Below, in pieces: positions 23,642 through 47,058 of a stretch of 64,000 nucleotides of DNA. The position numbers were made by a program, and so were the translations under genes. This DNA comes from Zancudomyces culisetae HAW-14-8 (taxonomy: Eukaryota; Fungi; Kickxellomycota), in assembly GCA_052426225.1 (NCBI GenBank), contig JBNJNM010000021.1, forward strand, positions 2,046,001 to 2,110,000, read 5' to 3'. The notes beneath the pieces were generated by a model that was not told where the DNA came from, ran no database searches, and saw only the letters and a list, made by a program, of their open reading frames with translations. Numbering within the stretch: the stretch's first letter is position 1; each line of letters begins with the position of its first letter.

Positions 23642-26600
23642 TCATACACACAAAAGTTCTAAACTTTTGTTTTCTCTTTCTGCACGTTGACAAAGCTCAA
23701 TTAAATCTTTATCACTTAGGTCTTTTGCAACCCTCATAATCCATTCCCTGTGCGCACTTGCATCAACACCATACTTTATCAACAAATTGATCATTTCTAC
23801 ATTTCCGTGTTTCACTGCCTCTTTAAGCCCATAATCTTTTTTTAGTACCAAGTTTGGATTTCTTTTCAGCAAGAGTCTCAGCATTTCCAAATTATTATTC
23901 TCACACGTCTGAACCACCCCACTATCACATCCCCTTTTTACCTTTAGCCCCTTTTCAAACAACAGCTTCAGAATTTCTAAGCTATTATTTCTACAGGCAT
24001 AGAATACGAAATCCAATTCGTTATTTTCAAGCGTAGTCGTATCTTTCAAAAGCAATTTAGTTGCCTCTAGTTTGTCATTCAGAATAGCAGATTCGAGTAG
24101 GCGAGAGACTCCACCAAGCTCAGGGCAATAGTTCAATATTAACTGTAGAGTTTCAATATTGTCTAAGTTAGGATAATCTTTAATGTAATATGAATATTTA
24201 TCAATTTTTACACCATGTTCCAACAATAATCTGACCATCTCAATATTATTTGCTTTGAGTGGTACATCTAGAATATTAGTGTAGTCCATAACACTTAGCC
24301 CATTCTCCAAAAGTAGTTTTACCACCTCAATATTTCCCATCTGCACAGCAAATTCTGCTATTTCACCAGCATCATTGAGATCAATCTTATAAGTCAGCAG
24401 TAACTTTAATATTTCAATGTTATTTGTTTTAATTGCAGTGTTTATCCCATATAACAGATCGCCATTCTGGATGGGTTTACCCCTATCAAGTAGTATTTTA
24501 GTGATCCTGTATTCTTTAGAACAAACGGTGTTTTCATGACCCAAGAATAAATCATGTTGTAATTCCCCTTCCTTTGTATCTGTTTTATCTTTTTTTTGTA
24601 ATACTCCCAAACCAACATAATACGCAAGAATTGTCTTCACCAACCTAATGTCTTCAATTAAACACGCATACTCTAATTGGTATCTACAAAGATATCCTAC
24701 AACAGCATTGTTATCCAAGAGATATTTCAGAGTTTTCTTGAAACCCAGTCTACATGAAATCCTAATTCCATTTCGAGCTGGATCGCTCAACTCAACTCCA
24801 TCTTTTACTAATAATTTAACCATATCAAAATTACCTAGTAAACACGCCATGTTGATACAAGGATATTCTGGATTCTTGGGTACAACACCACCATTCTTCA
24901 TCCAGTGCTGCAAAACTTCAACTTTATCTGATTCACACGCCTGTTCAAACCCATCCGATTCATCTCTTAGTTTTGCACCTTTACTGATAAAGTAATCTAT
25001 CCAATCAATATCACCTGCTTTGTATGCTGTTCTCAAGATTAAACTATCATGCGAATTGACACTCATTCCATTCTCTATTAACAGTTTCAACATTTTAAAG
25101 TTTCGGTCCACCAATTCTGACTTTGCTAGCTCATAATGCTCATCATTTAATAGCTCTACATTTTTCTCGTTTTCTGACTCGTTGGTTTCACAGTGTTCAG
25201 TGTTGTTGAATGTTATTTCTGGGTCGTTTTCAAGAATATATTCAATAATCTCAACCACTTTATCGTAACAAGCTCTTTTACTTTTGTTGTTACAAGAAGG
25301 GTGTAAAAGAGTTGCAAAATATGATGCACATACATTGGTGATGTCCTTTTTTTTTGAGTTTGTACTTGTCATTATTTTCTCGTATAAATCCATATATTCA
25401 TAAAAATCATCAAGCTCGGCATTATCATTATATGCATCATATTTTTGATAAAGTCCAATAAGACACATTATTGTTTTACTAAATTTCAGTCTCGTTCCAA
25501 ATTTGAGTTTGTCTCCTAAAGTTTTACACTTAACCTTAAGCTTATCTTCTGAAAACATCAACAATCGTTCTGCTATTTGATAATTTTTAACACTACTCGA
25601 CTTTTCAATACCATGCTGAATATTTGGCTCAACAGAAGCACCATTTTCCAATAGCAATTGTAACACATTGATATCCTTTTTTTTGACGGCAATTAGTATT
25701 CCTTCAAAATGAGGTAATTTTAAATCCGCTCCAGATTCAACAAGTAGTTTTACAATTCTGGTATCTCCACTTTCCACAGCTTTCTCTAAACAATTAATAC
25801 TCACTATATTTGGATATCTATTTATGATTTCTAGCGCTAGTTTGTAGTCGTTCTCTTTTATAGCCGTTTTCAAAACTTTTTCGCTCAGATCCCCTTTCAA
25901 TTTATCACTGTGATTTAAAAGTAGTCTTATGAGATCAGTATTACCACTTTCGTATGCCACTTCTGTTATTTTTCTGATGTTTTCCGAGTCTAATTCAATT
26001 TTGAAAAAGTATTCCTTGACTAATACCCGATCTCTATGATAGACCGCTGCATCGAACAATATTTGTGCGTGTATACCGCTAAAGTAGTTATCTTTGAGAT
26101 ATGAGATAAAGCTTTTTATATTCAAAGAAATTGAATAATATACAACCAGCATGTATACCAACAACTCCATGTTATCCGTGTTTTTATATTGCATAATAAA
26201 AGTGTTAAAAGCTTCATCAATGGGATTATCACGAGATGCAGCAAATAGTTGTAGCTGTCTAAAAGAAAGGTCTGTGCTCATTTCCAGATCCAAAATTATT
26301 TTTAGCCATTCAAGATTGTGCAATTGACAGGTTTCATGTGCAGCCACTAATATACAACATATCATAAATTTGTCATCAATGCATCTAATATCTCTCCCGA
26401 TAGAACTACATATCTCTGGCGGAAACTCAAACCTAGTGTTACATATATTTATTAATAGTTCGATATCGTTTTCCCCAGCAATATTAACCATCTCGCGTAT
26501 TAAAAGTGATGAGGCATTGATTTTAGTTATTATTGGTTTAATACAGATATAATCAGAAACCCAAATGTCCGTTTCTTCTATTTGTGCTTTGTTTCCTTCT

Positions 26601-27055
26601 GAGAACAAATTTTCAATGTCAATATCCAAATATTCACCCTCCTTTATAAATAAAGTACCCTTATGCATAATTTTTGAGGTATTCCTATCAATCACTACAT
26701 ACATCTTGAGCAACTTAATTACAACATTTCCCCACCTATACTCAAATGCCATATCTAGAGCTGTTCCGTAGTCCAGGTTCTTGATGCTTCTCAAAACCAG
26801 TATCCCAATAGCTTCATTAGCTCTAATTCTGGTGTAACTCTCGAATATGTCTCTCGACCTCCACTGGGAAAGAAACCCTGTGCATGGCAAAATATAGTGA
26901 AGTATGTACTTGCTAATAGTGCTCACTTTCTGCGAGCTATAGTGCATATTTTTGTTTAAGAGTGACAACTGAGGGTTCTGGGCAAGCACAAATATGGTTG
27001 ACAGGACACTTCCTGGAAGCTTGTTAAATGCACAGCTGTTTTTGTTGAAATACAT
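23642..27055 (-). CDS. Intronless 1137-aa ankyrin-repeat protein with F-box-like N-terminus, copy 1
   Basis: Many ankyrin motifs (AVESGDTRIVKLLVESGAD, ACLLGNFDMVKLLV, AVQMGNIEVVKLLLENG, AVKHGNVEMINLLIKYGVD). N-terminal FNKLPGSVLSTIF resembles LPxElLxxIF. Confidence 0.9.
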   Translation of the reverse strand: MYFNKNSCAFNKLPGSVLSTIFVLAQNPQLSLLNKNMHYSSQKVSTISKYILHYILPCTGFLSQWRSRDIFESYTRIRANEAIGILVLRSIKNLDYGTALDMAFEYRWGNVVIKLLKMYVVIDRNTSKIMHKGTLFIKEGEYLDIDIENLFSEGNKAQIEETDIWVSDYICIKPIITKINASSLLIREMVNIAGENDIELLINICNTRFEFPPEICSSIGRDIRCIDDKFMICCILVAAHETCQLHNLEWLKIILDLEMSTDLSFRQLQLFAASRDNPIDEAFNTFIMQYKNTDNMELLVYMLVVYYSISLNIKSFISYLKDNYFSGIHAQILFDAAVYHRDRVLVKEYFFKIELDSENIRKITEVAYESGNTDLIRLLLNHSDKLKGDLSEKVLKTAIKENDYKLALEIINRYPNIVSINCLEKAVESGDTRIVKLLVESGADLKLPHFEGILIAVKKKDINVLQLLLENGASVEPNIQHGIEKSSSVKNYQIAERLLMFSEDKLKVKCKTLGDKLKFGTRLKFSKTIMCLIGLYQKYDAYNDNAELDDFYEYMDLYEKIMTSTNSKKKDITNVCASYFATLLHPSCNNKSKRACYDKVVEIIEYILENDPEITFNNTEHCETNESENEKNVELLNDEHYELAKSELVDRNFKMLKLLIENGMSVNSHDSLILRTAYKAGDIDWIDYFISKGAKLRDESDGFEQACESDKVEVLQHWMKNGGVVPKNPEYPCINMACLLGNFDMVKLLVKDGVELSDPARNGIRISCRLGFKKTLKYLLDNNAVVGYLCRYQLEYACLIEDIRLVKTILAYYVGLGVLQKKDKTDTKEGELQHDLFLGHENTVCSKEYRITKILLDRGKPIQNGDLLYGINTAIKTNNIEILKLLLTYKIDLNDAGEIAEFAVQMGNIEVVKLLLENGLSVMDYTNILDVPLKANNIEMVRLLLEHGVKIDKYSYYIKDYPNLDNIETLQLILNYCPELGGVSRLLESAILNDKLEATKLLLKDTTTLENNELDFVFYACRNNSLEILKLLFEKGLKVKRGCDSGVVQTCENNNLEMLRLLLKRNPNLVLKKDYGLKEAVKHGNVEMINLLIKYGVDASAHREWIMRVAKDLSDKDLIELCQRAERENKSLELLCV

Positions 27056-29385
27056 TGTGCAGTGGTCTGATTTACTTTTGTTTCCTCTCTTCTGGGTTAA
27101 TAAGGTTGCTAGTAATTTAAAGTAAACTAGTAAAATGAATAAAGCGCTGAACGGCAGAAATGTGTTTTCTTTTCACTGTTTCCTAATTTTTTTGTTATTT
27201 TCTAATTTATCAACTTTAATTTAAGCGGTTATTTTTAGCGTGAATTGAAAATAATTATTATTGAGAATCCAGATGATTGCACATTGTCCAGGATTATACA
27301 CCAAATCAGAAGGTTGATTTATTTCCAAGCCAATAACCTAGGATTTTTTCTGATTTTCAAGATGAATTAGCTAATATTATAAAAATCCCATCAACTTAGT
27401 AACACAAAGATGTTCCAACTCCACTATTTATCATCGTACACAAACCAGATATTCCATGTCTGTTATTCTTGTTGTGTTGATTATTGAATGGTTCTTGGTA
27501 GAGTTGTGTATTAGGATCGGTAAAATAGTTGTACTTTGAGATTAGATATATTTAGTAGATTTGTGAGTTTTATGAATCGGTTGTGATACTATATTTCAAG
27601 TAATCAATACTCATTCGTATTACTATTTAAATATATGACGAGAAATCAATCCCATTTCAGTTCAACAACCAAATAATACCCTAGATCAATACATGAGCTT
27701 AGAGTTGAATAAACTCTATCAGTTGAATGAATACAACTCGAACTAAAAAAGAGTATAAAAAAATTCCAAATATCAAAATAAGCAATTTTCTGGTAATATG
27801 TCGTCAGGAATATCTATATTTTTGCTCGACTTCAGAGTTATCTCAGCTGGCAAAAATAAGTAATACACCTCATATCAACAGGTTATAATCTGTTGTTTTT
27901 ACTGAGTTATGTTAGAATCAACAGAAAATCATGATTTTACTCCAATTCGTATAAAGTTTATGAGAAATATTCAATATTGTAACATAACAGAGTATACGAA
28001 AGGATTATACAGGTAATACTGACAACATTCCCGCAAGGTATCTGGTTTATGTTCATAAGAGTGTTGATTTTTGTAAAATAGCAGTTACAAATATATCGAA
28101 AAGTGATACTATTCATACTATTGGATTAAGTGGCATGGTTTATACTACAAGGTAAAAAATGGGAGTAAAAAATAAAATACTCAAGGTTATATATCTAACC
28201 GTAGCTACTGATCTGAACACACCTTTGAATAACTGTATAGCATTATATAAATATTATTTGAGTGGAGGTACATGATGGATTAACATTCTACTCAAGAAAG
28301 TTGAAAAACCATTGAACACTAACGAACTCCTGGTGAAAATTACTGTAGCTCTGAAAGTATTAAAAGTCTGAAACACTTGTTTTGTCAGGGTTGAAAGGTA
28401 ATTAAAAAACCAATTATCAGTTACCTTAAAATAGCATATAAATTCAAATATGTCGAATTGGTTCAAACGAATAAAATACTTGTATAAATGAGAGGTGTGA
28501 ACTTGGCAATTCAGTGAAACTGCAATACTTGATTGAAAAATGTGTCTCTATCATAAAATATATATATAATCTGTGGGTTACTTTTAAACAGGGAAATATC
28601 CAACTGGTAAAAATTATTGACTGAAAATTGAATTAATCTACTCACAAAGTATAATTATATGCATTCGAGTCGGGTTCCAAATAAGTCGATGATTCTAAAA
28701 TTGCTAACCAAAATTCGCATAGATCCTGGAAACAGGCTAGCAAAGTCTATTAATCTAGCATATGAGTAGGATAAACATAGTTATGTACAGCTATTGATAA
28801 GAGGTATCATATTTACTACGCTCTCCCTTAATCCAGAGCAATAAAGATGGTTTAGACCTTATTTAAATAAAACCAGTTCTTTTTTGTATATATTGATAGA
28901 CCAAAATTAATGAGTTTGTTGAAAATAGTCTTGGTTTGAGTTTTTTGTGATAGCAGGTTTCAATGCCAGATATACACACCTAAGTATTAAATGAAAATGT
29001 TTTATCCAACCCGAGTTTATTGATTTTAGTATTTCCTACTATTGTTATTTTCTTTAATGGAACAAATTAATCAAGGCTTAATAGCAACTGATATTTTGCA
29101 ACATTCTGGCTATATATTTATGTATTTATTTATTTCTGAAGAATAGAATAGTTCTAAAACTATAATACTACACAGGTTATGGTAAAATGCAAGAGTATGC
29201 TAATAAATAATAAACAAAAAAACATCAAGAGTTCAAAGTAAAATGATCTTGGTTTTTTGCTAACTGTCTGTTCTCACCAGTTACAAAAAAGTATGAATCT
29301 GTTAATGATACCAAAGTAAAAGCAGCGAATACCCCAACTACAAATATGTGCTGTGGGACATAAAACATGACTACTCCACTACTTC

Positions 29386-29781
29386 TTAACATTTACATCC
29401 AGATTCACAGTGACATTTCTCGCCTTTACTCTCCTTGCATTCACAGGTTGCTTGTTCACACGTACATGGTTCTCCACATGTACAACCTTTATCATCTCTG
29501 CACTGACATATACTTTTTCCTTCACACTTGCACTCATTCTCCCTGCAGATACACTTTTTACCTACTGAACACCTACAGAAGACACCAGCCTCCTTATTTT
29601 CAGCACAATTGCACTTTTCAGATTCACAACAACATTTTCCTTCAGAGGTGGCTGAACAACCTTGTCCCATCTTGCAGCAGCATTCACAATTTCCAACCTC
29701 ACATGAACACCGACCCCCGGGAGCATCTCTGCACTTTCCAATATCTTTGTTGTAACAGTCTTTCTTGTCGCATGAACTCAT
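29386..29781 (-). CDS. Long metallothionein-like Cys-rich protein (131 aa, 33 Cys), copy 1
   Basis: From the ATG of MSSCDKK: two CCC clusters, many CxC motifs, K/E/G-rich, almost no aromatic residues, no signal peptide. A TATAAATA box lies ~145 bp upstream. Confidence 0.8.
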   Translation of the reverse strand: MSSCDKKDCYNKDIGKCRDAPGGRCSCEVGNCECCCKMGQGCSATSEGKCCCESEKCNCAENKEAGVFCRCSVGKKCICRENECKCEGKSICQCRDDKGCTCGEPCTCEQATCECKESKGEKCHCESGCKC

Positions 29782-31783
29782 TTTTAGTTTATTTATTCTG
29801 GTTTGTATTGGTTTATTAGTCAACCTTATTGGTATTATTATTTTCTTTTTGTATTTAGTATGAAATACTAGGTAGTTTTATGATTAATACTTTCTTGTTT
29901 TTGTTTTTTTTGACAAAAGCTGTTGACTATTTATACTTTTTTCTTGATATCTGGTTTCCTATGTACATACTCAAGACTCGGATGGTATTTTTATGAAAAC
30001 AGGAACTTATACACTTGAAAAAGTGCATTACACATCCGAGTTACTTTTGCCTGTAACCAAGTATATATGATTATAAATCATTTACATACACTTTTCATTT
30101 TTCGTTATATTCATTAAAATTGCATTTACAAAACCCATCTTGTTACCCAATAGCGAAATTGGATCCCATTTAATATTTTAATTGATTTTTTTCCTAACTG
30201 CTTTATGATTCTGTCACAAGGTTTACCACTGCCATTTCTCCTCCTCACCTCTTATTTTCTAGTTGCGCTGATTCTGCTATTCGCTACTTTTTAGAAAATA
30301 TCACCACTGTTTATCTTCATTACACTTTTTTACTCAACCAACCTTTTATAATTTAGTCCTGCTTTTTGATACATTTATAACCACATTAAACCCAGGCATT
30401 AATACCTATTCCACAAATGTTTATTTGTTATTGACATGTAAATTAATACAACATAAAACTACAAAAAATCATAAATAATAATTATATAGATAATTAATCT
30501 TTCTCCTGCTGAGGACTCCATATACCAACCTAACATTGGATCAAGGGAAAGAAATATCTCTTTTTCAAAAGACATCATTATAATTCTAAACATGAAATCA
30601 CAAAGACTCCTTGTGTGTTAGATATTAACTTATTCGCAATAACTATATTTTCAACAAATATATCAAATATCATTAGAAATGGTGCTAGTAAATTAAATTA
30701 GCTCTATTTCTTTAGCTATGACTGTTATTATCTTCTAACAAAAAAATATACAAACATATTTGGCATTTATCATTAAAATATGCCAAACTATATATAGGTT
30801 TACCAAATGTAGCACCATGATTTAAAAATAAAGTTAATAATCAAGTACACTTTTACTTTCTCTTTTAACACTAGCAAAAAGTAAGTCCTTTAGATAATTC
30901 ATGTATTAGACATTTGTTTCGCATTTGTAACACTACAGTAAATAACAAATCGACGAATTCATCATCCGTGTAACACCATATGTCAAAAAAATATTCCACG
31001 ATTTATTTTTTATCACTACAACACATTTTCTTATTCAACTCACAATGAGTTATTGTATACAATTGAAGTTAAACCAACTTTTATTTCAACAGAACATCAT
31101 TGATCTTTAATATAAAACTATAAAGCCTATTTTATATTTGAAACCACACCCTCCAAGGCTGATAATTTTGCTGAAACGAATAATTTAGCATTTATCTACT
31201 ACTGAATCAAACCTTTCTAGAATATCAACAACCGGTACTGAGCATGGTAGCTATTTCAAGTATATAAAGACCCCTGTTAACTACTATAATTCTACTATAT
31301 TATTTTTTGTTTATACTAACTGGTCTGATATTAACTATCATTATTAAAGAAGTAACTGGTTTTAAATTGAAGTTATCAACTTATAAAATCTAAATATCCA
31401 GAACCTGTCGCTGCAATTCTATGGGTATTGTGAATAGTGTTGGAATATAAGTAAAAAAGTTTACTTACAAAACTAGAAACGGAGCAAAAATCGGATTTGA
31501 AACATTAGAGTAAAAAATCAAAACATTGAAAAATCAAATCCAAAGAATCGAGATAAATACTGATTTTGAATTAACGGAAATCAAATCTCTATCTAGATAT
31601 GGTGTTAAGCAGTGAACATAAACTTTTGTACATTCAGGTTACTGCTAAAGATTGCTTTTTCTACCCCGTTAAACTATCCTGTACGTGTAAACGTACATTA
31701 GAACTGCTGTATGAAAACCAGGTACAGCTTCGATCAATAAATATTGAGAAAACTGGCCGTTGTGTTAAACATATCGAGCAAAA

Positions 31784-32014
31784 CTAGTTTATTTGCTGCT
31801 TGCTTACATAGCTGAGAGGTGATCCGACAGTTGCTAGTCCATACTGAGTAATAATTAATTTGAGCCGTTCGATATTTTCAATTAATTTTTGTGAGGTCTC
31901 CCGGTTACTTTTTAACTGTTCTTTTATCGCTTTTGAAATCCTTCTTAGTTCAGTGCACTTTTGGATTAGAATTATTGATGTTAGGATTGTTAAAACAGAT
32001 ATACCTTCTACCAT
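31784..32014 (-). CDS. Small orphan ORF (76 aa; hydrophobic N-terminus plus coiled-coil-like segment), copy 1
   Basis: ATG-initiated ORF with protein-like heptad pattern in otherwise non-coding AT-rich DNA; no family recognised. Confidence 0.3.
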   Translation of the reverse strand: MVEGISVLTILTSIILIQKCTELRRISKAIKEQLKSNRETSQKLIENIERLKLIITQYGLATVGSPLSYVSKQQIN

Positions 32015-34238
32015 AAAAGTATGGTATTTAATGATATTTTTTATAACTAAAATTGATGTTTTGCTGAGGTGATAATAGTTTTTGAACTAATGTAGCTAGA
32101 AAAATGATATTATTTAGCAATATCGCGGTTAATGATAGTCTTTTTATATTTAAAGCGGTTTCCATAATCAATATTGATTGTTTATCTTTTTGAAGGTCTT
32201 TGTTTCGTTGTAGACATTCTAATGTTGTTTTTTTCAACTACAATAAACAGACTTTAAAGGTATAATGCAATAAATAGTGAACTTTATTGTTTGTATTAAA
32301 ACTTCAACGATTTTAAAATAGAAAGAGCATAAACTCAATATCAATATATATTTTAACGAACTCTTTATTATTGAATACAGAAATATACTCTATTGATAAA
32401 AAATAAGGCGTGAATTATACTTTGAAGTGTGATGTTACAAACGCAGTATAGTTGTTTATTAGTGTTGTTATTGTAGTGTTACGAATCCGGAGAAAGTTTA
32501 ATATTGGTAAATTATTCATCAAAGATGGTTTCTTTCTTAGATGTTAAAGGAAGGAGTACAAGCGAAAAATGATTTCTATCATTTTTCTTAATGTGATCCT
32601 ACATTTGATAAACCAACATATAATTTGATGTAGTTTAATACTGAATGTAAAGAACTACTGTTTATTATTAGCTTTTGTTAAGATAAATAATAGTCAATGA
32701 GTATAGTTTTAAATGAGTAAAATGTTGTCGACTTGTTTCTTTAAAATCCAAATAACCAGTTTAGTTGTAAAAATCAATGAGATTGTTAATGTATTTAATA
32801 TATGACAGATAAACACCAAATAATACTAGAGAGTTGAGTTTCATTATAAAAACAAAACCTAAATTCTGACTCTATGGATATAATGAATGTAGTATCATAT
32901 ACAATAGTTAGCAAATACACTATTATTTTTATTCTACTTTTCAATATTATAATTGAATAAAATTGATACCTTCGACACAATCGTTTATGATAAATGCCAA
33001 AGAGAAAATGCCTAACTATATTATCAGCCTTTCAATGATGTGCAACCAGCTATTTACCAATGTGAACAGTTTATAATACATTGACATTTTGGCTTCAATC
33101 TAGATGCTAGTCAATTTATACTCGTCCTCTAGATCTATTATTGTATTTATCCAGTCAATTTAATCATTACTATTATCTTCATTAACGAGTAAATTATAGC
33201 CCGGAAGGATATATAAACTGTTAATTATGAATGCACCGCCTAGTACTTTTTTCATTCCGGTCTTTAGCAAAATTAGTAATATGCAGTGATTAGTTTGAAG
33301 ATCACTATAGCCTATACACTTTACTGAATGCCATCATTGAGACCTTACAATTATTAAATCTAGTATTGTATTTCTTTTCATATTTGACAGCTAATGTCTA
33401 ATCATTTTGTTCAACCTTCTTGTTAAACAAAACTCAATCAGAGCATTGAAAGTTATAACCAAAAGTCTTTAAATTCTAAATTCTAGTTTTCCGATAATCC
33501 AGAAGCTGGGCTAGTAATGTCAATACTTTGTTAGTCAATGCTATTTCGCTTGAGCAGTTAATTTGTTCTTTCAAAATTGGCTAGAACATATATCACATAC
33601 CTTTCAATAATAATTACTAGTAACTCTGGTGTTGAGTATGAGAGTAAAGAGAACTGAGTGAAGGATATGACCACATAAATAAATTCTATTGAATAATTAT
33701 ATATAGCTTTGCCGATTATATTTTTATTTACTGCGAAAACTATTTATTCGGGCTCACTTGACAACAATTGTCAAAATATGTAACCTTTTCAATCAATAGC
33801 AACACCAGATTAAATCTACTGGTTATTACGAATATCAATTTTGAATATACATTGTACTAGAACAGCTAGCATTTTTTTCAACTCTACTGTTAATATGCAA
33901 GTTAATTCTAGTGTATTAATATAAGAAAGTACGAAGATCTGAAAATGTCAGGTCAATACTAAACTCGCTATGGACCTTTACAAATATAAAATGTTGATCT
34001 CCGTTAGGCTACACACCAACACAAGTCTGAAATATCAGCATCTAGATAATACAACTCAGTAACTATTAACGTAATACAGCGTTTATATATACAGCCAAAA
34101 GCTTAGCAGCAACAAAAAAAAGATATAAAGGGTCGATGTATTTTTGTAGAATTGATTTCTTTACATTTCAAAAGTGTTTAGAACTTTATCCTAGATAAAA
34201 ACAAACTAGACTTAGAAAAAAACTCAAAAAAAGTAAAA

Positions 34239-34718
34239 ATGGTAAACATTTTGTTGACAAGTGCACTTTTGATTGCCTCAAGCTTTGTAGCCAGTTCTAA
34301 CATCCCAGACGTTCAGCTTGCCGATGCCAATACCCCAAATGCTCAGATAGCACAAGCTAGCGGAGAAGCTGACTACAAACTCAGCCATTGTGGTTGTCGT
34401 GATGATGATGACAACCACAAGACTTTGGCTATCGAAATGTTTGGAGAAAGGCTTATGAAAAACAGGGTTGGCTTTAAAACAATTCGTCCACGTAAATGCT
34501 ACCGCTTACCTAACATTAATTCATGTCTACTTGATGGTGGCAAACCTGGTGAGGGAATAATTATGTTCTGCACTGGATCCAAGTGTAATGGTAGCTGCCG
34601 GTCCCTGCCAAGACTAAAATGGTATACCCCTGGAGATATGAATTTTGATATCGGAGGACATGCAAACTCAGTTTACTGGACCACTTCAGAAGATGATAGT
34701 TTGATACAACTTGCTTAG
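34239..34718 (+). CDS. Small secreted Cys-rich protein (159 aa), Asp-tract variant (CGC-RDDDDNH)
   Basis: Signal-peptide-like N-terminus (MVNILLTSALLIASSFVAS), A-rich start context, upstream TATAAA at ~34124, AATAAA at ~34818, Cys-containing C-terminal domain. Confidence 0.8.
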   Translation: MVNILLTSALLIASSFVASSNIPDVQLADANTPNAQIAQASGEADYKLSHCGCRDDDDNHKTLAIEMFGERLMKNRVGFKTIRPRKCYRLPNINSCLLDGGKPGEGIIMFCTGSKCNGSCRSLPRLKWYTPGDMNFDIGGHANSVYWTTSEDDSLIQLA

Positions 34719-35398
34719 AACTGTTTAAACCTGTGAACAAGGCTATGTTTCTTTAGATTTTAATTTTAGATTTAGGTACAGGCTTTTAGTTTTTGGCGAT
34801 AGAATCAACTTTAGGCAAATAAAACTGCATTGACAATGATCATTAGAGTAAATAGCCACTTGGCTATATTTTCTATTGTTTAGAAACAAGGTTTGAATAA
34901 ACTGAAATGTACGTATTATGGATTAGGAGCAATATCAAGGATTGAAGTATAGAAAGCTGCAAAAATAGCTATAGAAACCTCTCAATCCTAGTCATTTAGA
35001 AATGGTGAACCAATAAAAATTGAATATACTTTTACATAATTATTACTCAACTTAACCTTGTTCACCTTGCAAATTGCTTCCCTTTTATCTCATCTCTTCA
35101 TCCCCCACTATTTTATATTCAATTTATTAAATATTACTATATTTTTGATTGCTAATATATGAATTTAAAAAAACAAGATACAGCTCAAGTACTTCTAAAT
35201 ATAATTTAGACTAACACTCTGAAGTATTATTAAGTGCATGATGAAAATACAATTTTTATTTATTTTTGAAGCCTGTTTAAAAATGTATATAATATACACT
35301 CTCCTCTAGCTAAGGATTCAATCTTTTTTCACTAATTATCTTGTGTTTGAGATTGGACAAGCCATAATCTATAATTGTTTACAGTATTATCTTATAAA

Positions 35399-35626
35399 TT
35401 AATACTGTCGGACGAGACCGGGCGGGTTACGTTCCTTAGTCGGGTTTCTCATGCTAAGGAACTGTTGTTGCACATGCTCCTGGACAAAAGCAAATGGATC
35501 ATGTGACTCGGTACGATCCAACTTCATAGAGGTGGCTCCGGAACGGTCGCTGTCCGGAGAGTAACAACCCTCATTCTTGAGCTGTTGGATGATGGCTGCA
35601 CGTAGTTGCTGCATGAGACCTGACAT
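35399..35626 (-). CDS. GC-rich orphan ORF (75 aa)
   Basis: The ATG..TAA limits coincide with a sharp G+C-rich island within very AT-rich flanks; no family recognised. Confidence 0.4.
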   Translation of the reverse strand: MSGLMQQLRAAIIQQLKNEGCYSPDSDRSGATSMKLDRTESHDPFAFVQEHVQQQFLSMRNPTKERNPPGLVRQY

Positions 35627-36865
35627 GAAATTTTATTTATTTTAAACTTTTACTATTTACTATTTTAAACTTTTAGCTGAAGCACTATTATATTATTATT
35701 ATATATTGACTTTTAAATAAACTTGTACTAAAAAAGCTTCTTGATCAACGTCTATATTTCCTGATGTCTCTATTATGTTTTAAACTACTAAAAGAGCTAA
35801 AGAAACTCCAATTGAGTTATCTTAGCTATATATATAATATTTATTAGTTTTAAATATATGCTTATTTCTTATACTGCTTAATTTGGTTAATCGCTAACTT
35901 TATTTCTTCATCCATATTTGGTCGCATTTTCCATACTCGTGTTTTTACTCTTATAATAATTGATATATACTAATATTATTAAATTGTTTTTATGGTGTTA
36001 TTTCATTTTATGATTTTTCTCTTAGATTTTCGATCATAATATTTTCGACATTTTGTGATCAGAGACTTAATTCATATTTTTGATTGTTAATATAATAGTT
36101 ATAATGAATTTCATTAATTTTATTTTTATAATTCCCTTTAAATACTCTGTCTTTCCCAAGTAATTGAATTTTCTAGGTCTTATACCCAGAACACACGATA
36201 CTGGAAAAGAAAATATTATTCACAATTCTTTTAATCTGGTGGGTACTCGCTTAAAAAAAGATATTAAATCAGCTTATTTTTATACTTTTGTCTGGGATTT
36301 AGGTATAGAGCTATCTATTCACCAATAATGAAACATCTATACTGGTACTATGATCTTTATCAAATATGAAATATCAAAACTCGATTATATGATTTAAACA
36401 CTTTTAATAGAAATTACAATATTTTTACTAAGAGAAATCCTATTTCTATCAACATAATATACGCCACACTTATAGATACAGGTTGAATAATATGATATTC
36501 AGATGAAAGTGTTTTCCACCTATTTCTCACCCATACCTTGCTAATAAGATGGTACTGATTAAACAACCGATAAGAGATCAGTAAATATTCATTAATATTT
36601 CTTTATATAATTGGTTTTATTTTTTAAAGATATACTTGTAGAGGTATTTAAGTTCATAACTATCGACTAGAATTTTTAATTAGTTACATTTGAATGGATT
36701 AATCGAGGTAAACGAGTATTTAAGAATGACTTTTGACCGACAATCAATTCTGGTACACAAGTATTTGTATTTGGATAAGATGTGATGGGTTTATTAAAGG
36801 GTAACTTGCACTATAAGACAATTACGAAAAGGGATAAAGAAAATATATCCGAAATACGTAGCCCA

Positions 36866-37340
36866 CTAGAACGTGTCTTTGCCCGGGTTTTGCAGACCAG
36901 ACTTAGCAATGAAAGAGATTTGCATATCCTTGTTTGACGACTTTTTGGTTTCTTTAGGGTATCCTAATTCTAATTCTAATTCGGCTATTTTCAACTTAAT
37001 GTCTATTTTATTAATCTTTGACTCTGATATTATTCGGTTTTCTTCAAATTTTAGCCTTTTTTCAAAAGATAGCTTTAGTCTTTCATTTTCGACTCTGAAC
37101 TTCTTATTTTCGAGTCTCTTATTCTCAATTGTTAACCTCCTTTCTCTTTCTCTTTCTCTTTCTTATATTTGAAGCTTTAGCTTCTCATACTCTTCCTTGG
37201 TTTTTTCTTCATACACCTTTCGATTTTCATCGTATTTTAATAACAATTTGTAACTCTGGTGTTGAAAGTAAAGAAATTCGCATGCCACAATGCCTGGAAT
37301 TATCTGTAGACCAACCCAGCTATTTAAAAATTTAAGATCT
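36866..37340 (-). pseudogene. Degraded gene for a TM plus coiled-coil protein
   Basis: One frame reads LKFLNSWVGLQIIPGIVACEFLYFQHQSYKLLLKYDENRKVYEEKTKEEYEKLKLQI*ERERERERRLTIENKRLENKKFRVENERLKLSFEKRLKFEENRII...IAELELELGYPK...KDTF*, with an in-frame TAA at 37163-37165. Confidence 0.5.
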
Positions 37341-37823
37341 ATGAAGCTAAATAAAAAACCGAAGACACAAACTAGTTCTGGTTTAAGAAATATTACAAAG
37401 GTAATGTACGTTAACTTCTTTATAGTGGTTGATCATTGTCTTTTCACGCTTGAAATGGTTGCCATATTAAGAGTTGGTGATTGGCCTTCTCGAACGTTTA
37501 AGTTTCGGTTGTTCGTATATTTATAACTTTTTTTTTCCAGTATATTAACAAAATTAACTGTGTATTCACAAATGTAATTTCTTTATTGATATTTATTCAA
37601 AGGTCAATATTTTAAACATGGAATTAGCGTTAGTTGATGTAAATAAATATTTCAATAATCTCTTTTTGAGTTGAATGAGGAAATATGTTGATCAGGTAAA
37701 AAATAAAGCCTGAGATATACTCTTCAAATGTGGTGAAACAAATACATATTGATTCTTCATTTTTATTGTAGTATTACGAATGCTGAACATTTGTGTAATT
37801 AGATAATTAATCATCAAAAACAG

Positions 37824-39593
37824 CTAAAAAATAATGCATTTGCTTCCAGGTTGAGCTGATTCACTGACTTCTCTCCAGATTGGCTGAATATCAATTGGAA
37901 CATCAGCCAACAAATCAAGCAGCTTAATCGTCTTTTCACGATTGTTTCCATACTTTTCAACAAAATTTGCCGCATCTTCTTTACTCCCGTTGCCCTGAAT
38001 AATCAAGATATCACGCGTCAAATTGCTAACAGCAGTTTCAATATTTTCAAAGTTGACTTTTACTTTTCCAGATCCATCTTCATATTCGAATCCGCCATTA
38101 TCAACCAGATAGTTTAGCTGAATTGCTTGTCCCCTGCCATGGGCCTCATTCAATCCAAATCTAATTGATCTGAACGCAGATGCCAAGTACGTCACGTAAA
38201 ACTGTTCCAAAGTAATTCCAGTAATGGTATTGTTTTTTACCAACAACGATGCTGCAAATAACCCCGTGATATCGGCCTTTGCCTCCTCAAGTGTTGAATG
38301 GAGTTCTTCCATTCTGCTCCTAACCGTTGTATTGCTATCATCAACAATATGGTGTGGACCATTTGAATGGGCCACTTCATGAAGTAAAACGTGTGTGAAA
38401 AAGGCACCAAAATCCACATGTTTTTGCTGTTCTTCAACGAGAACGAGATTCGATATTGGTGTCAATACACTTTCGAACTTCCCATATTGTACATTTTTAA
38501 TGAGGGTTAGTTTGGCGCCTGCTATTTTAATCGCTTCTTCATCATTGGGCAAATTGTAGGCGGCTGTCATCGGTACTGATGTGTCGCCGCCACTATAGAT
38601 TTCGTTGACTACTACGATTGTTGGTTTTTTCAATTCGGTGTTTTTGTACTTGTCGGGCACAGGCAGGTGTGACTCAATAAATTGTAGGCTGTCTGTAAAC
38701 TTTGCTAGATTCTTTGTCTCGTCAAAATCACGAACATGAATAAAGGATTCGTAGAAGGATTTTGACGAGAACAAATTGTCCTTGTAAACTTCATATGGGC
38801 CAATTGCAACTATTGATATTGTAGGTAGATATTGTTACTTGTCGTTATAAACTCCAACCCTAAACGGATCTACTTATTGAATATATACGCGTAAATGTAC
38901 TGGTATTCAGGTAGATTATAGAACAGAATAGATAGAGTAAAAGGTTCATTCTTTAGGTTTACCTTCGATCGGGGAGCTCTCCGCAATCTTTAACCAGGAA
39001 ATTTCACTCGTAACATAGTCATTATCAATAAAGCTTTTACTTCTACCCAACAAAAAGGCACTCAAGCTAGCATCGCTAACAAGCTCCGAGGCTTCCTGCA
39101 AGAGCTGTGCTGCTGGTTCAAGGTACTCTTTATAGGCTTCGTTATACCCCTTCAACTGCAATTTTCCGTCGCAATCCCTTTCAATAACATCGTAAAATCC
39201 TCTCGCTCTTTTTTTATCATCTTCGCAAAGCGTGTCTACCCAGCTAAGAAATTCCTCCTTGGTCATGTCTTCGGGGTAGACATTAGATCCTAGTGGCTTT
39301 TTTGGAACACCCTCGATAAAACTGTTGTCGTCATCTGAGGCATCCCAGGGACCCTTAATTACCATAAAATACTTGTAAAGCAAGGCATCCTTTTCACTTT
39401 TGGAGCTGTCTCTTTGCAATCTTTCCTTTAGTTCAAGACACCCCTTCCAGAGCTGCTTGAAGTAAATACTGTCAATGATTTTGGAGGCAGCAACAAGTTT
39501 TTGGAGTGCCTGCTGATCGCCTTGGGACAAATGGCTGAGGTCGGCCTCGAGTTTTGTTGGTTTGTACTGCGCTAATCTCTTTTCAATATCCAT
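37824..39593 (-). CDS. Peptidase family M49 (DPP III-like, HEXXH type, similar to the peptidase domain of plant Nudix hydrolase 3 and bacterial DPP III); 2 exons (39593-38963, 38809-37824), ~538 aa
   Basis: KGPWD, G.NVYPEDMTKEEF, IGPYEVYKD, TAAYNLPNDE, KNVQYGKF, FFTHVLLHEVAHSNGP, LEEAKADITGL, RSIRFGLNEAHGRG. A GT-AG intron at 38810-38962 joins the two ORFs in frame. Confidence 0.9.
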
Positions 39594-39653
39594 TTTCCTT
39601 TTCCTTTTCCTTTTCCTTTTCCTTTTCCTTTTCCTTTTCCTTTTCCTTTTCCT
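39594..39653 (-). repeat. (GGAAAA)x10 microsatellite abutting the peptidase start codon
   Basis: (ttttcc)n on the + strand immediately after the CAT at 39591-39593. Confidence 0.95.
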
Positions 39654-40000
39654 TTATTGTATTTTTAAACTCAGACCATATATTACTATTTTACCACCCA
39701 TATCAGTCCCATTTCTTTTGTGTTCAACCCAATAATGGTCACCATCCAAAAAATGTAAATCCAATAATGCAGTTGTATTTGTAATAATTCTCCAGAAGTT
39801 GGCCAACCACCAATTAAATTGCTTTGATGCTCAATTGTTTAATTGGTCGAGAATTTAATATATCTAATTAATAACACAATTACCAAACAAATGAGAGCAA
39901 GGTGAGATCACCCTCCTTCCTCTCCACCTCCTATCCTCCCCTTAAGCTAATAGGGGGAAAAATACCAATACGAAAGCAAAAAGTCATAAATAACTGTAAA

Positions 40001-43000
40001 CTACAAGGTGCCAAGTATGGCTTCAATTTCTTTTTTCAGCACGATATCACTGGACTGTTCATGAATTGACCTCAACGTGCCAATGTCCTTTGCTGCGATG
40101 GCAGCCTCGACAGCTTCATTTAAAAAGTTGATTTTCAGATAGAGGGGAGGTCTTTGGCTTAGTTTACAGAACGGAATATACTTTGCTGCTTCTTGGAACT
40201 GCTGGGCATTTGTCAATTCATCAACAAAAGGCTTGAAGCCAATTGGGGAATTTTTGGCTTTGGAAAGCTTGTCAAGTTCGACAAAATCACGGATTTTCAC
40301 CAATGCACGGAGTTTTAGGTGGTAGTAAGAAGAGTCTGCAACATTGAAATCGTGCTTGACGGAATTAGCAAGTGAATACTGCTTTAGTAGTACCAACTTG
40401 GTTATTGTTTGGAACAGACTAAGACCTACAAAGCTCAAATGCTGGCCATGTTTGGAGGCATATGCATTCAGGCTTGAATTGAGCGACGACAAAGATGGTA
40501 GGGATTTCAAGTAAGTTGGGGTGTAGTTATTGTACCTAACAGTCAGCTGTGCATTGGTGAGGTCAGCCTCCAATTTGCACTGCAGGCTCAATAGTTTAGC
40601 TTGCAATATAAGTTCCTACATGAGTAAAGATATACGTTTGATAAGTGCGCACAAACAAACGAACAAAGAAATAGCTGAATAGGCGTATAACAAAAAATAA
40701 TTCTTAAAAAAAAAACTCCACAAAACTTACTCTATGCTCAAGAGACATATCGGGATCTTTAGAAAGCAAAGATATAATTGAGTTGAAATGCGAAATAAAC
40801 TCGATGTTTTCCTATTAGATAGTATTTCAGGTGAGATAAAGTCAAAAATCAGTTTGTAGATAGTGAAAATAAACTTACGAGAGGAGAATTGTAAACTTCA
40901 AGAACGTGTAGCAGAAACGAGCCAAAATAGTCGTCTTCTTGGAAGTGAAAGTTCTTCAAAACGCTGAGTTTGTTCAGGTTTAGACAATACTTAACAAACA
41001 ACAAAGAGGCAAACTTGTTTGTGCTTACAAGTTTGAAAAAGTCTCCAAGAGGAAGTTGGTTATACAGAGAAAAAAGAACAAGATAAATTAGATCAACGTT
41101 TCCGCTGCTTATAGACTCTTTCAAAGCTAACGAGTGGAATGACATTGATAGAAGTAGCGGAACCTTGTTTGACGCAGAGGTTTCAAGCTGGAGTAGCTTT
41201 GCGGCAAGTTTTTGTCTCCCGCATACTCTTGCTGTCTCGGCAATGTTGATATATGAAATGCCGGAAATCTCGCTCAGCTTGTTCAGTAATACCGAGTATA
41301 AATAGTCGTCGTCGCTGGTTGAGTTTCTGATTTTGGCATTGGCCCAGTGAATGTATACAGTGTCAAACCCAAGCTTTAAATGTTTGCAAAATTGAAGTCC
41401 CATAAAATGCAGGTTTCTCTCCAGCAACTTTTCAAGCCAACCAAAACTCGTTAAACTCAAATATTGCACCATAGTTGGACACAGAGCTATGCTTCCGTGT
41501 CTCAGCGAGTTTAGAATTCTCAAATTGTTACATGCTTCTACAAACCTTGCTGGGTTGTGGTCAACTATAAACGATTTCCCATATGATGCTGCCCGCAACA
41601 ACGCCTGCTGCAGTTCCACTTCAAACTCGTTGCCAGCTGCCTCTATACATGTGTTGACCGCCTGGCTTAAACTTGCGCCAATACTCTTGACAATCTCGTC
41701 CGCCTTAGCTGAGTTGTTCTTTAGTCTCTGATGAGCATCAAACAGCAATGCTGCTGGCTGTGTAGATCCCGCCTGAAAAACACTGAGTAGTGGTTCTATT
41801 TATACGGGGTTTTTTCATATCACTTATTAACTCCAATGTCTTTTTTTGACTTTCATTATTATGCATACCTGGTATTTTGTGAATAAACTCGTGGACTTCT
41901 TGGTTAAATACTCTGACTCCATCGATTTCTTGCACCAAATACACATCGCTCTCGTATTCAAACCTACAATCGCACAAAATTCATTGCTTTATCCTCCGCT
42001 CTGGATTACTTTTAAAAACAAATTCAATATATTTGATTCAAATCAATATATTTGGGCTTACTCTAGTGTTCCTCCAAATGGTCCAGCCAAAATAACTCTG
42101 TTTCCAAATGATACTACAACTCCATCTTCTCCACTCCTAAATTTTATATTTTGTCGGTTTTCAATCTGTTTAGTCCAGTTTTCACAAAATAATATTACAA
42201 ACTGCTTTACCATTTTATCTCGCTAATTTCACATTTGTCTTCCTCAGCTTCCTCGCTATCAATATTTTCCCCAAGTATTTCGTGCAAATCAATCTCTGAA
42301 AATGATTTCTGGAAATCCGATGACACTACCATTAGCTTTCCTGAGGGTTGGTATAGAGCAATCAACTTTGCATTCGGTGATATCGCCATTCTCGTAAACG
42401 GTCCCTGCTGTAAATACTATTACATTTTCAGTTATATATATGCTTTAGTAAATTATCCTTGAAACTATCACTCAAATCCATTATAAATCACCTGTTGTTA
42501 TCTTCACAACACAAGGTTAAGAAATATAAATGCATAGTTTATACCTGATCTTGAGTTTCAGAGATGTCCGCAATCAATATGGTGCCCCCAACTGACAAAT
42601 ACACCTCAACATGCCCGCTGTTAGTCAAATATGGCGGAACAACCTCCCAGCTATTTGGCTTCTCACGTAACTCTATTCATTTTTTTAATTTTTAATATCA
42701 ACTCCACCATATACCTTTACTCTCTTTATAACCTATAAGCTTTGGTCACCTACTTGTGTTCATGAATACAGTGGGTTTAGGATTCCACAAGTCTTCTACA
42801 CATATTATCTGAAAATTCGTCGTAATCGCAACCAACCCGCTTTCCCAAAACTTGCACTCCAAAATCCCCTCCAATTGTGGATCCTGTTTGTGTATAATCA
42901 AACCTTAGTATATTTCGTTCACATCCTCACCTCCATTCTCAACAAGTTGCACTTACTATGCCTAGCGTGAAAACTCGATTTTCGCCTGATATTCCAAATA

Positions 43001-43573
43001 TTCTAACCGCCCCATCGCTTTGAACACATACTATCTCATCTTTTCTATTCCAGCCAATACCTACTATCTCTATCTCCTCGCACTATCACGCATTCACAGA
43101 TTATTCTCCGTCTCAAAGTTAATATACATTTAATATTCTTGTAAAAACACCTACCTCAATCAATCCGATTTTTCCACCCGTAGCTTTAAAAACTCCAATA
43201 GAACCCTCCATTATCTCTGTCGATTCGACTTCAACAAGTACTCCAAAATTCCTTATCATCGCTAATTTGATATTTTCCGAATTCTTGTGACACAATACAA
43301 AAATGTATAATCAAAAAAAATAACGATTTCTCGAATTTTTACCTATTGGACCACCATATGGTGCGGGAAACACCCTGTATTTTGGAAGATAGATGTCATT
43401 CCAATCCATGTCGTAGATTTTGACTTTTCTAAATAGCACATAAAAATTAGGTTTTCCTTTAATTTTCACTAAGCAAGACAATACAAACTAGAAATAGGAA
43501 TAAAAGATTACCTATAGAATACATCTTGAAGCAGAAACCAATTGGCGGTTGGGTTGTCTATATCTTCCCTCAT
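40001..43573 (-). CDS. VPS16: Vacuolar protein sorting 16 (HOPS/CORVET core subunit), ~12 exons
   Basis: MREDIDNPTANWFLLQDVFYR|K..IYDMDW...PYGGPIA; MAISPNAKLIALY; EIDGVRVF; KADEIVKSI...AV.TCIEAAG.EF...QQALLRAASYGK; HWANAKI; GISYINIAETA...GR.KLA; KVPLLLSM; KNSPIGFKPFV. About 11 short GT-AG introns were traced by hand. Confidence 0.93.
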
Positions 43574-44123
43574 TTTATGATTGTTTATTTGTTCTGTTCA
43601 GGAATGTATGTGTGGCCTTGGATTCAAATAAAACAAAATGGGCAAAAAACAATAGTTAATTTCTAGATATTTCGGTCGGAGTAAATAAAGGCATGCAAAA
43701 TTAAAAGCTTGAATTATAAAAAATGTGTTAATTTAAAGCGCGTTGATTTGACAATTTAAATTGTCACAGTAACCCAAGAGTCACCTGGAAGTTGAGCCAA
43801 CCAAAGCAATTAAAATCGTTAGGAAGTCCCCATCCCCATGTAAAAAACAATCTGATGCCTGGATGAGCGTGTTTATAATTGAGGAAATCGATATGTTGAA
43901 TTTTTGTGTATTCTTTATTAAGAAATAGCCACTAATGGTGACTGGAGAATTCGTTTTACAAAACATCTTTCGAAAGTCTATAATAACTCTATTAATGTTC
44001 AAGTATTGTCAATGCAGTTTTATTTGCCTAAAGTTGATTCTATCGCCAAAAACTAAAAGCCTGTACCTAAATCTAAAATAAAAAACTAAAGAAACATAGC
44101 CTTGTTCACAGGTTTAAACAGTT

Positions 44124-44603
44124 CTAAGCAAGTTGTATCAAACTATCATCTTCTGAAGTGGTCCAGTAAACTGAGTTTGCATGTCCTCCGATATCAAAAT
44201 TCATATCTCCAGGGGTATACCATTTTAGTCTTGGCAGGGACCGGCAGCTACCATTACACTTGGATCCAGTGCAGAACATAATTATTCCCTCACCAGGTTT
44301 GCCACCATCAAGTAGACATGAATTAATGTTAGGTAAGCGGTAGCATTTACGTGGACGAATTGTTTTAAAGCCAACCCTATTTTTCATAAGCCTTTCTCCA
44401 AACATTTCGATAGCCAAAGTCTTGTGGTGGTGATGATGATGATGACAACCACAATGATTGAGTTTGTAGTCAGCTTCTCCGCTAGCTTGTGCTATCTGAG
44501 CATTTGGGGTATTGGCATCGGCAAGCTGAACGTCTGGGATGTTAGAACTGGCTACAAAGCTTGAGGCAATCAAAAGTGCACTTGTCAACAAAATGTTTAC
44601 CAT
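44124..44603 (-). CDS. Small secreted Cys-rich protein (159 aa), His-tract variant (CGC-HHHHHHH)
   Basis: Mirror of 34239-34718; identical except S->N and RDDDDN->HHHHHH. Confidence 0.8.
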   Translation of the reverse strand: MVNILLTSALLIASSFVASSNIPDVQLADANTPNAQIAQASGEADYKLNHCGCHHHHHHHKTLAIEMFGERLMKNRVGFKTIRPRKCYRLPNINSCLLDGGKPGEGIIMFCTGSKCNGSCRSLPRLKWYTPGDMNFDIGGHANSVYWTTSEDDSLIQLA

Positions 44604-46827
44604 TTTTACTTTTTTTGAGTTTTTTTCTAAGTCTAGTTTGTTTTTATCTAGGATAAAGTTCTAAACACTTTTGAAATGTAAAGAAATCAATTCTACAAAA
44701 ATACATCGACCCTTTATATCTTTTTTTTGTTGCTGCTAAGCTTTTGGCTGTATATATAAACGCTGTATTACGTTAATAGTTACTGAGTTGTATTATCTAG
44801 ATGCTGATATTTCAGACTTGTGTTGGTGTGTAGCCTGACGGAGATCAACATTTTATATTTGTAAAGGTCCATAGCGAATTTAGTATTGACCTGACATTTT
44901 CAGATCTTCGTACTTTCTTATATTAATACTTTAGAATTAACTTGCATATTAACAGTAGAGTTGAAAAAAATGCTAGCTGTTCTAGTACAATGTATATTCA
45001 AAATTGATATTCGTAATAACCAGTAGATTTAATCTGGTGTTGCTATTGATTGAAAAGGTTACATATTTTGACAATTGTTGTCAAGTGAGCCCGAATAGAT
45101 AGTTTTCGCAGTAAATAAAAATATAATCGGCAAAGCTATACATAATTATTCAATAGAATTTATTTATGTGGTCATATCCTTCACTCAGTTCTCTTTACTC
45201 TCATACTCAACACCAGAGTTACTAGTAATTATTATTGAAAGGTATGTGATATATGTTCTAGCCAATTTTGAAAGAACAAATTAACTGCTCAAGCGAAATA
45301 GCATTGACTAACAAAGTATTGACATTACTAGCCCAGCTTCTGGATTATCGGAAAACTAGAATTTAGAATTTAAAGACTTTTGGTTATAACTTTCAATGCT
45401 CTGATTGAGTTTTGTTTAACAAGAAGGTTGAACAAAATGATTAGACATTAGCTGTCAAATATGAAAAGAAATACAATACTAGATTTAATAATTGTAAGGT
45501 CTCAATGATGGCATTCAGTAAAGTGTATAGGCTATAGTGATCTTCAAACTAATCACTGCATATTACTAATTTTGCTAAAGACCGGAATGAAAAAAGTACT
45601 AGGCGGTGCATTCATAATTAACAGTTTATATATCCTTCCGGGCTATAATTTACTCGTTAATGAAGATAATAGTAATGATTAAATTGACTGGATAAATACA
45701 ATAATAGATCTAGAGGACGAGTATAAATTGACTAGCATCTAGATTGAAGCCAAAATGTCAATGTATTATAAACTGTTCACATTGGTAAATAGCTGGTTGC
45801 ACATCATTGAAAGGCTGATAATATAGTTAGGCATTTTCTCTTTGGCATTTATCATAAACGATTGTGTCGAAGGTATCAATTTTATTCAATTATAATATTG
45901 AAAAGTAGAATAAAAATAATAGTGTATTTGCTAACTATTGTATATGATACTACATTCATTATATCCATAGAGTCAGAATTTAGGTTTTGTTTTTATAATG
46001 AAACTCAACTCTCTAGTATTATTTGGTGTTTATCTGTCATATATTAAATACATTAACAATCTCATTGATTTTTACAACTAAACTGGTTATTTGGATTTTA
46101 AAGAAACAAGTCGACAACATTTTACTCATTTAAAACTATACTCATTGACTATTATTTATCTTAACAAAAGCTAATAATAAACAGTAGTTCTTTACATTCA
46201 GTATTAAACTACATCAAATTATATGTTGGTTTATCAAATGTAGGATCACATTAAGAAAAATGATAGAAATCATTTTTCGCTTGTACTCCTTCCTTTAACA
46301 TCTAAGAAAGAAACCATCTTTGATGAATAATTTACCAATATTAAACTTTCTCCGGATTCGTAACACTACAATAACAACACTAATAAACAACTATACTGCG
46401 TTTGTAACATCACACTTCAAAGTATAATTCACGCCTTATTTTTTATCAATAGAGTATATTTCTGTATTCAATAATAAAGAGTTCGTTAAAATATATATTG
46501 ATATTGAGTTTATGCTCTTTCTATTTTAAAATCGTTGAAGTTTTAATACAAACAATAAAGTTCACTATTTATTGCATTATACCTTTAAAGTCTGTTTATT
46601 GTAGTTGAAAAAAACAACATTAGAATGTCTACAACGAAACAAAGACCTTCAAAAAGATAAACAATCAATATTGATTATGGAAACCGCTTTAAATATAAAA
46701 AGACTATCATTAACCGCGATATTGCTAAATAATATCATTTTTCTAGCTACATTAGTTCAAAAACTATTATCACCTCAGCAAAACATCAATTTTAGTTATA
46801 AAAAATATCATTAAATACCATACTTTT

Positions 46828-47058
46828 ATGGTAGAAGGTATATCTGTTTTAACAATCCTAACATCAATAATTCTAATCCAAAAGTGCACTGAACTAAGAA
46901 GGATTTCAAAAGCGATAAAAGAACAGTTAAAAAGTAACCGGGAGACCTCACAAAAATTAATTGAAAATATCGAACGGCTCAAATTAATTATTACTCAGTA
47001 TGGACTAGCAACTGTCGGATCACCTCTCAGCTATGTAAGCAAGCAGCAAATAAACTAG
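46828..47058 (+). CDS. Small orphan ORF (76 aa), copy 2
   Basis: Identical translation to 31784-32014. Confidence 0.3.
   Translation: MVEGISVLTILTSIILIQKCTELRRISKAIKEQLKSNRETSQKLIENIERLKLIITQYGLATVGSPLSYVSKQQIN

Follow-up and report, generated by a model that had tools for sequence, protein, structure and literature searches.

Inter-strand template switching, with inversion of the spacer, is described by the four-point model of Loytynoja and Goldman (2017; PMC5453318), and template switching at short imperfect inverted repeats was reported in coding genes of S. cerevisiae (Abraham and Hazkani-Covo, 2021; PMC8604942). In the yeast gene REG2, such a switch combined inversion of the spacer with perfection of the arms, which resulted in seven substitutions affecting five residues; in the course of yeast evolution, spacers have also been inverted again and again where the stem is perfect and at least 9-11 bp long (PMC8604942). 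The repair synthesis that accompanies gene conversion in yeast has been reported to raise mutagenesis about 1000-fold and to be prone to perfecting quasi-palindromes (Sugawara, Towne, Lovett, Haber; bioRxiv 10.1101/2023.08.09.552703).

The locus presented here lies in a window of 64,000 nucleotides, this being the whole stretch of DNA analysed, from strain HAW-14-8 of Zancudomyces culisetae (assembly GCA_052426225.1, contig JBNJNM010000021.1, positions 2,046,001 to 2,110,000). This fungus is a Harpellales gut symbiont of mosquito larvae. The window contains two copies of a gene for a putatively secreted protein, which differ in a histidine tract encoded within a short inverted repeat.

Two gene copies in the arms of a palindrome

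The genome from which the window was taken comprises 27.09 Mb in 25 contigs, with 34% G+C; the published assembly of HAW-14-8 is given as 27.18 Mb in 26 contigs (PMC12611240). Both gene copies are situated in a palindrome with arms of about 24 kb (Table 1), the identity between the arms being 90.6% in their outermost part, 98.7% further in and 99.55% over the inner 4258 bp, with zero differences over about 3 kb (30752-33700). This looks like ongoing gene conversion from arm to arm, strongest near the spacer.

As a comparison strain we used COL-18-3, whose Illumina assembly (GCA_001969505.1) holds three copies of the gene, one on contig 220 (LSSK01000220.1; L021) and one in each of the two arms of contig 223 (LSSK01000223.1; L022 and L023). 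Contig 223 is collinear with the window, from left arm through spacer to right arm, so that the palindrome is real and was assembled independently, L022 being the positional counterpart of the left copy. The arms of contig 223 are ~1.5% apart, and those of the window genome are largely homogenised. Comparison with L021, L022 and L023 over 25500-34837 shows the window arms to be mosaics in which two haplotype classes of COL-18-3 are combined: from 28489 to 29068 L022 clusters with the right arm, from 33701 to 34005 with the left one, and at 34385 the left copy has the state of the other haplotype class. L021 and L023 represent two assembled versions of the right arm and spacer, about 1% apart, which suggests that COL-18-3 is heterozygous or has a duplicated locus. 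In L023, moreover, the gene model (P0004, 110 aa) is cut short by an N gap.

The two 159-aa open reading frames of the window differ solely at residue 48 (Ser or Asn) and in the tract, RDDDDNH versus HHHHHHH. The original prediction, made from the letters of the window, had read a perfect stem encoding RDDDDNHK in the left copy and an imperfect stem encoding HHHHHHHK in the right one, and both readings were confirmed by sequence and translation. On the coding strand of the right copy (44454-44422), the left arm is the same as in the left copy, the loop reads ATCATCATCAT, and the right arm is matched at 9 of 11 positions. Folded as single-stranded DNA, the derived repeat reached -11.5 kcal/mol (z = -3.8) and the ancestral one -4.8 kcal/mol, not better than shuffled sequences. 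A perfect 11-bp stem is in itself unexceptional, as two such hairpins were present in the window against ~1.15 expected from shuffles. The only other perfect short hairpin in the window is AT-rich and lies at 4161-4200, with a 12-bp stem and a 16-nt loop.

Table 1. Coordinates of the palindrome, the gene copies and the sequence features within them (window positions).
Feature	Position	Strand or copy	Remarks
Palindrome left arm	10684-34837	.	From comparison of the window and the 10 kb that follow it
Unique spacer, 9167 bp	34838-44004	.	Carries Vps16 and M49 peptidase genes
Palindrome right arm	44005-64000	.	Runs about 4.3 kb past the window end (L025:1-4269)
Left gene copy, 159 aa	34239-34718	+	Signal-peptide-like N-terminus, predicted disordered linker with CGC-RDDDDNHK (derived allele), predicted beta-gamma-crystallin-like Cys-rich domain
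Right gene copy, 159 aa	44124-44603	-	CGC-HHHHHHHK, ancestral tract state
Asn/Ser codon	34384-34385	+	AGC in the left copy (Ser), AAT in the right copy (Asn), AAC in the COL-18-3 type-2 copies
Derived perfect inverted repeat	34388-34420	left copy	11-bp arms and 11-nt loop
A>G, His>Arg	34399	+	At the inferred switch junction; left unexplained by a simple copy
21-nt segment, putative template-switch copy	34400-34420	+	Reverse complement of ancestral 34388-34408; covers 34401, 34404, 34407, 34410 and 34413
Ancestral quasi-palindrome	44422-44454	right copy	Arms matched at 9/11, (CAT)n loop

The substitution cluster and its fit to a reverse-complement copy

Over the inner 4258 bp the arms differ at 19 positions, six of which fall within the 15 bp at 34399-34413, where 0.04 differences per 15 bp are expected at the local divergence (probability of six or more, ~5e-12). 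Two more arm differences, at 34384 and 34385, lie 14-15 bp upstream of the cluster and had been omitted from the original prediction. With the COL-18-3 copies and the nearest paralog as references, the left copy is derived at all six tract positions and, by an A>G (Asn>Ser), at 34384; at 34385, a C>T is derived in the right copy and in L022, not in the left copy. This polarity follows from the presence of His7 in COL-18-3 (L021 and L023, both with the upstream codon AAC) and of a longer His-rich tract at the same place in the nearest paralog (59% identity), in agreement with the ancestral state, His7 as in the right copy, that had been assumed beforehand. All seven left-derived changes at 34384-34413 alter the protein. 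C>G accounts for four of the six cluster changes, against 4.3% of the other 161 differences between the arms (P = 5e-5).

Five of these six tract changes are explained by a copy of the reverse complement of the ancestral left arm and loop. With the same copy, the stem goes from 9/11 matched positions to 11/11 and the loop is inverted, 10 of its 11 bases being those of the reverse complement; the exception is 34399 at the junction. The imperfect inverted repeat required for such a copy pre-existed in the His7 alleles (right copy, L021 and L023), with arms matched at 9/11 and an 11-nt loop. Of the two arms of the left copy, the left one has kept the ancestral sequence and the right one is altered at 34410 and 34413 to full complementarity, so the relationship is non-reciprocal. 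Stem perfection together with loop inversion had been put forward as the signature of template switching, and such a non-reciprocal reverse-complement copy indeed matches the published inter-strand pattern (PMC5453318, Fig. 1B; PMC8604942). It leaves one mismatch, versus three for a reciprocal inversion, whether of the loop or of loop and arms. A reciprocal micro-inversion between the short arms was rejected on account of the unchanged left arm and these three remaining mismatches. A switch out of register by 3 nt would template the G at 34399 but adds one GAT unit, so that a second event would be needed, namely the loss of 3 bp or a His6 ancestor, seen in no allele. The A>G at 34384 is likewise not accounted for by the copy model. 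It makes AGCCA (34383-34387) complementary to TGGCT (34426-34430), 5 nt past the stem, and extends the potential hairpin; this complementarity could be due to chance, for which our own estimate is ~0.1.

The fit was specific to this site. Arm-versus-arm and strain-versus-strain alignments, ~60 kb in all, contained 45 substitution clusters. When these were scanned with partial coverage allowed (the copy need not cover every difference in a cluster), a reverse-complement copy fitted this one only. Reverse-only control copies, modelled on the false-positive test of PMC5453318, and complement-only control copies gave 0 fits of 90 each in the same alignments. With six random substitutions in the tract, five were explained in 0.06% of simulations (P = 0.0006). 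Small arm-to-arm substitution clusters also occur at 29053-29068 and 29363-29430, in and near the metallothionein-like ORFs (29367-29823), and a reverse-complement copy fits none of them.

A donor elsewhere in the genome was also considered. In favour of short ectopic gene conversion from a paralog with an Asp tract, the family has at least 120 genome matches and some paralogs show a DDDN tract in the linker. It is nevertheless hardly credible: in a whole-genome search, the 27-mer with up to 3 mismatches matched only the two sites themselves, the DDDN of the paralogs is encoded by GAC GAC GAC AAT, that is by different codons at a non-homologous position, and the nearest paralog is 59% identical only.

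We consider it probable that a single short template switch at the quasi-palindrome produced the core of the cluster. During synthesis over the ancestral His7 quasi-palindrome of the left copy, the nascent strand would have quit its template just past the left arm, copied about 14-21 nt of the complementary strand through the loop and left arm, and then returned. The outcome would have been in frame, CAT/CAC codons becoming GAT/GAC/AAC and HHHHH becoming DDDDN, with the stem made perfect. The synthesis concerned may have belonged to replication or to repair, the latter in the course of gene conversion from arm to arm; had the other palindrome arm served as template, its plus strand having the reverse-complement sequence, the product would be identical to that made from the local complementary strand. 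For the two remaining A>G changes, His>Arg at the junction and Asn>Ser 15 bp upstream, the same error-prone synthesis may be responsible, or point mutation at a later time. The sequences themselves show how the two tracts are related, which of them is derived, that the fit is unique and that there is no other donor; a single event, its timing and the kind of synthesis are what we infer from this pattern of substitutions.

It could be objected that the Asp allele, known from one assembly only, is an assembly or consensus artefact and absent from the organism. Indeed, exact-protein look-ups in the protein collection returned no second record of either window allele, and no match was obtained when metagenome contigs were scanned with a degenerate pattern that allowed for every possible state of the tract. 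We judge an artefact to be very unlikely, however, since the HAW-14-8 genome is a PacBio HiFi/hifiasm assembly at 48x (PMC12611240), the six substitutions are in frame with no indel, which is atypical of long-read error, the tract is situated about 420-450 bp from unique spacer DNA, so that reads are easily placed, and the palindrome structure was recovered from the Illumina data of COL-18-3.

One switch or several steps

The nature of the tract complicates the interpretation of the cluster. Read in frame, (CAT)n becomes (GAT)n on reverse complementation, and a C>G at codon position 1 is the sole one-step route from His to Asp, so that selection for Asp would mimic loop inversion, and four of the five 'explained' changes are also those expected from stepwise point substitutions under selection for an acidic or non-His tract. 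The match to a copy would then be a by-product of codon structure. In line with this, five of the six changes were explained in 3.4% of simulations of selection for Asp, with four His>Asp and two other replacements (P = 0.034); every left-derived change is protein-altering, and the linker is hypervariable among paralogs. We nevertheless regard a stepwise origin as rather unlikely. It requires six to seven substitutions to be fixed within 30 bp, against a gain of ~0.2% in the 4.2 kb around them, four of the substitutions being C>G against the spectrum given above, with Asp exactly at codons 2-5 and His>Asn exactly at the stem-perfecting codon. Selection for Asp would be least likely to yield the pair CAC>GAC and CAC>AAC, which falls on precisely the two stem positions that were mismatched. 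The His>Arg replacement is, furthermore, at odds with acidification. Lastly, the 63-nt His-rich tract of the sister paralog (HHHYDHGHDHHHHHHHH) is DNA-identical between the strains (L003:1501-1992 versus L024:1501-1884) despite a divergence of 3.7% in the surrounding 1.3 kb, which indicates that His tracts are not generally unstable here. Selected His>Asp changes and loop inversion thus predict the same nucleotides in a (CAT)n tract, and calls of this kind need outgroups and allele surveys.

The alleles of COL-18-3 bear on the number of steps. L022, with the upstream codon AAT, encodes HHDHHHH through a single C>G at the equivalent of 34404, which is the exact centre of the quasi-palindrome and one among the five 'copied' changes. 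In a stepwise history this allele would be a surviving early step, present in the positional ortholog of the left copy. The original prediction had named stepwise point-mutation intermediates as refuting it, and HHDHHHH, being of that kind, counts in part against it. Its claim of one event is weakened: five of six changes fit one copy, and the A>G at 34399 and 34384 and the HHDHHHH allele of the second strain fall outside it. L022 and the left copy also have four variants in common (33701, 33911, 33912 and 34005), so the G at 34404 may have been inherited by the left copy on an L022-type haplotype; a full-loop switch would restore C there, in which case the history needs more steps. With strains 1-3% diverged, about one substitution is expected in the 63 tract positions of the three copies, and the chance that it falls on one of the five predicted changes is about 0.05-0.08 by our own estimate. 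On the evidence of five alleles, HHDHHHH in L022 may be inherited, independent or a conversion remnant. A history consistent with the single switch that we favour would have gene conversion between the arms return the left tract to His7, with the switch arising in that repair synthesis.

Two or more separate switches at the same quasi-palindrome could also be envisaged, either as an intra-strand switch that perfects the right arm, followed by a loop flip on the perfect stem, or as a partial switch on an HHDHHHH ancestor. Yeast offers a parallel, 9 of 10 spacer inversions having occurred on already perfect stems and some sites having flipped repeatedly (PMC8604942), and in our reading a copy confined to 34405-34413 on an HHDHHHH ancestor would explain 34407, 34410 and 34413. 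Such histories appear improbable to us, as they involve more events than a single switch, as the five alleles observed (RDDDDNH, three times His7, and HHDHHHH) do not include the intermediate HHHHDNH, and as the partial switch leaves 34399 and 34401 unexplained.

HHHHDNH is also the third form that had been predicted to arise if the loop re-inverted on the perfected stem, and the two loop orientations on the same perfect stem were not seen among the five alleles of the two strains. Since yeast spacers on perfect stems have flipped repeatedly (PMC8604942), re-inversion of the loop would by analogy be a precedented, rare event. It is very doubtful that the perfected stem lets the loop flip appreciably, to the point that a clonal culture would be a mixture of RDDDDNH and HHHHDNH. 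If true, this would constitute a heritable, reversible and recombinase-free toggle between an acidic and a His-rich linker in a secreted, gut-exposed protein.

The encoded protein and comparison with known systems

The N-terminus of the protein looks like a signal peptide in our reading of the sequence. Residues 1-60, which include the tract (53-59), were predicted with low confidence and correspond to a hypervariable, gap-rich region in the alignment of relatives, and residues 61-150 were modelled by AlphaFold2 with a pLDDT of about 96. The top 50 structural matches in the PDB were beta-gamma-crystallin domains in 50 cases out of 50, at a Foldseek E of only about 0.01, and structural comparison gave VIA Z values of 7.4-8.4 with 2.3-3 A rmsd over about 78-90 residues. 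The modelled fold of residues 61-150 thus qualifies as a beta-gamma-crystallin-like double Greek-key beta-sandwich of about 85-90 residues. Pfam, including the Crystall profile, gave no match for the protein at E <= 0.01 or for 20 aligned relatives at E <= 1.

The gene is not an orphan and belongs to a lineage-restricted expanded family, given the 120 or more six-frame matches in the genome, many of them within about 60 kb of contig ends, and relatives limited to 15 representatives among 1.84 billion proteins. Family members are small secreted Cys-rich proteins, some copies being identical on different contigs, and relatives in other organisms are nearly absent. Several relatives (for example P0008, P0016, P0017 and P0018) present KR, RR or KRR directly before the conserved domain (alignment A1, columns about 80-95), and the variable linker may accordingly be a Kex2-type propeptide; P0016 retains the CGC motif immediately ahead of the dibasic site. 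Since the tract is part of a linker that is disordered and hypervariable and precedes the folded domain, its change was probably tolerated. Any functional effect, such as the loss of a putative His-rich metal-binding tract, is conjectural, altered metal binding being plausible for a CGC-His7 tract.

The locus illustrates in compact form how one error of copying can exchange five neighbouring residues and give a tract the opposite charge; without this explanation, a secreted protein showing such a pattern would be taken to be under strong positive selection. Template switches in coding sequences are thereby extended to an early-diverging fungus (Zoopagomycota), here with an event within gene-converting palindrome arms. 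It also provides a natural protein pair, His7 versus Asp-rich on an identical background, suited to testing the role of the tract.

As regards the protein, the predicted domain shares the beta-gamma-crystallin fold with lens crystallins, microbial single-domain crystallins, N. crassa APP and S. mansoni IPSE/alpha-1. It differs from known beta-gamma-crystallins in being Cys-rich, in belonging to a lineage-restricted family and in having no Pfam match.

As regards the mutation, REG2 offers the closest likeness: in both cases an imperfect repeat in a fungal coding gene was perfected and its spacer inverted, leaving a cluster of substitutions with about five adjacent residues replaced. Unlike in REG2, the spacer here is an 11-nt triplet repeat, so that its inversion reads as the swap of a His homopolymer for an Asp one, two bases, one at the junction and one nearby, are not accounted for by the copy, paralogs in palindrome arms are compared instead of strains, and a one-step allele exists in another strain. 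The event proposed for the left copy corresponds to the inter-strand case, with inverted spacer, of the four-point model and of Ripley's quasi-palindrome model; unlike the study that introduced the former, ours concerns a single locus examined by hand and not a whole genome, and the low complexity of the repeat lowers the information in the match. The locus resembles the quasi-palindrome mutations of yeast break repair in that it lies in palindrome arms that exchange sequence by gene conversion, whereas the event here may have happened during ordinary replication. The mechanism is one already described, and the locus is a clear example of a known mutation type, not of a new mechanism.
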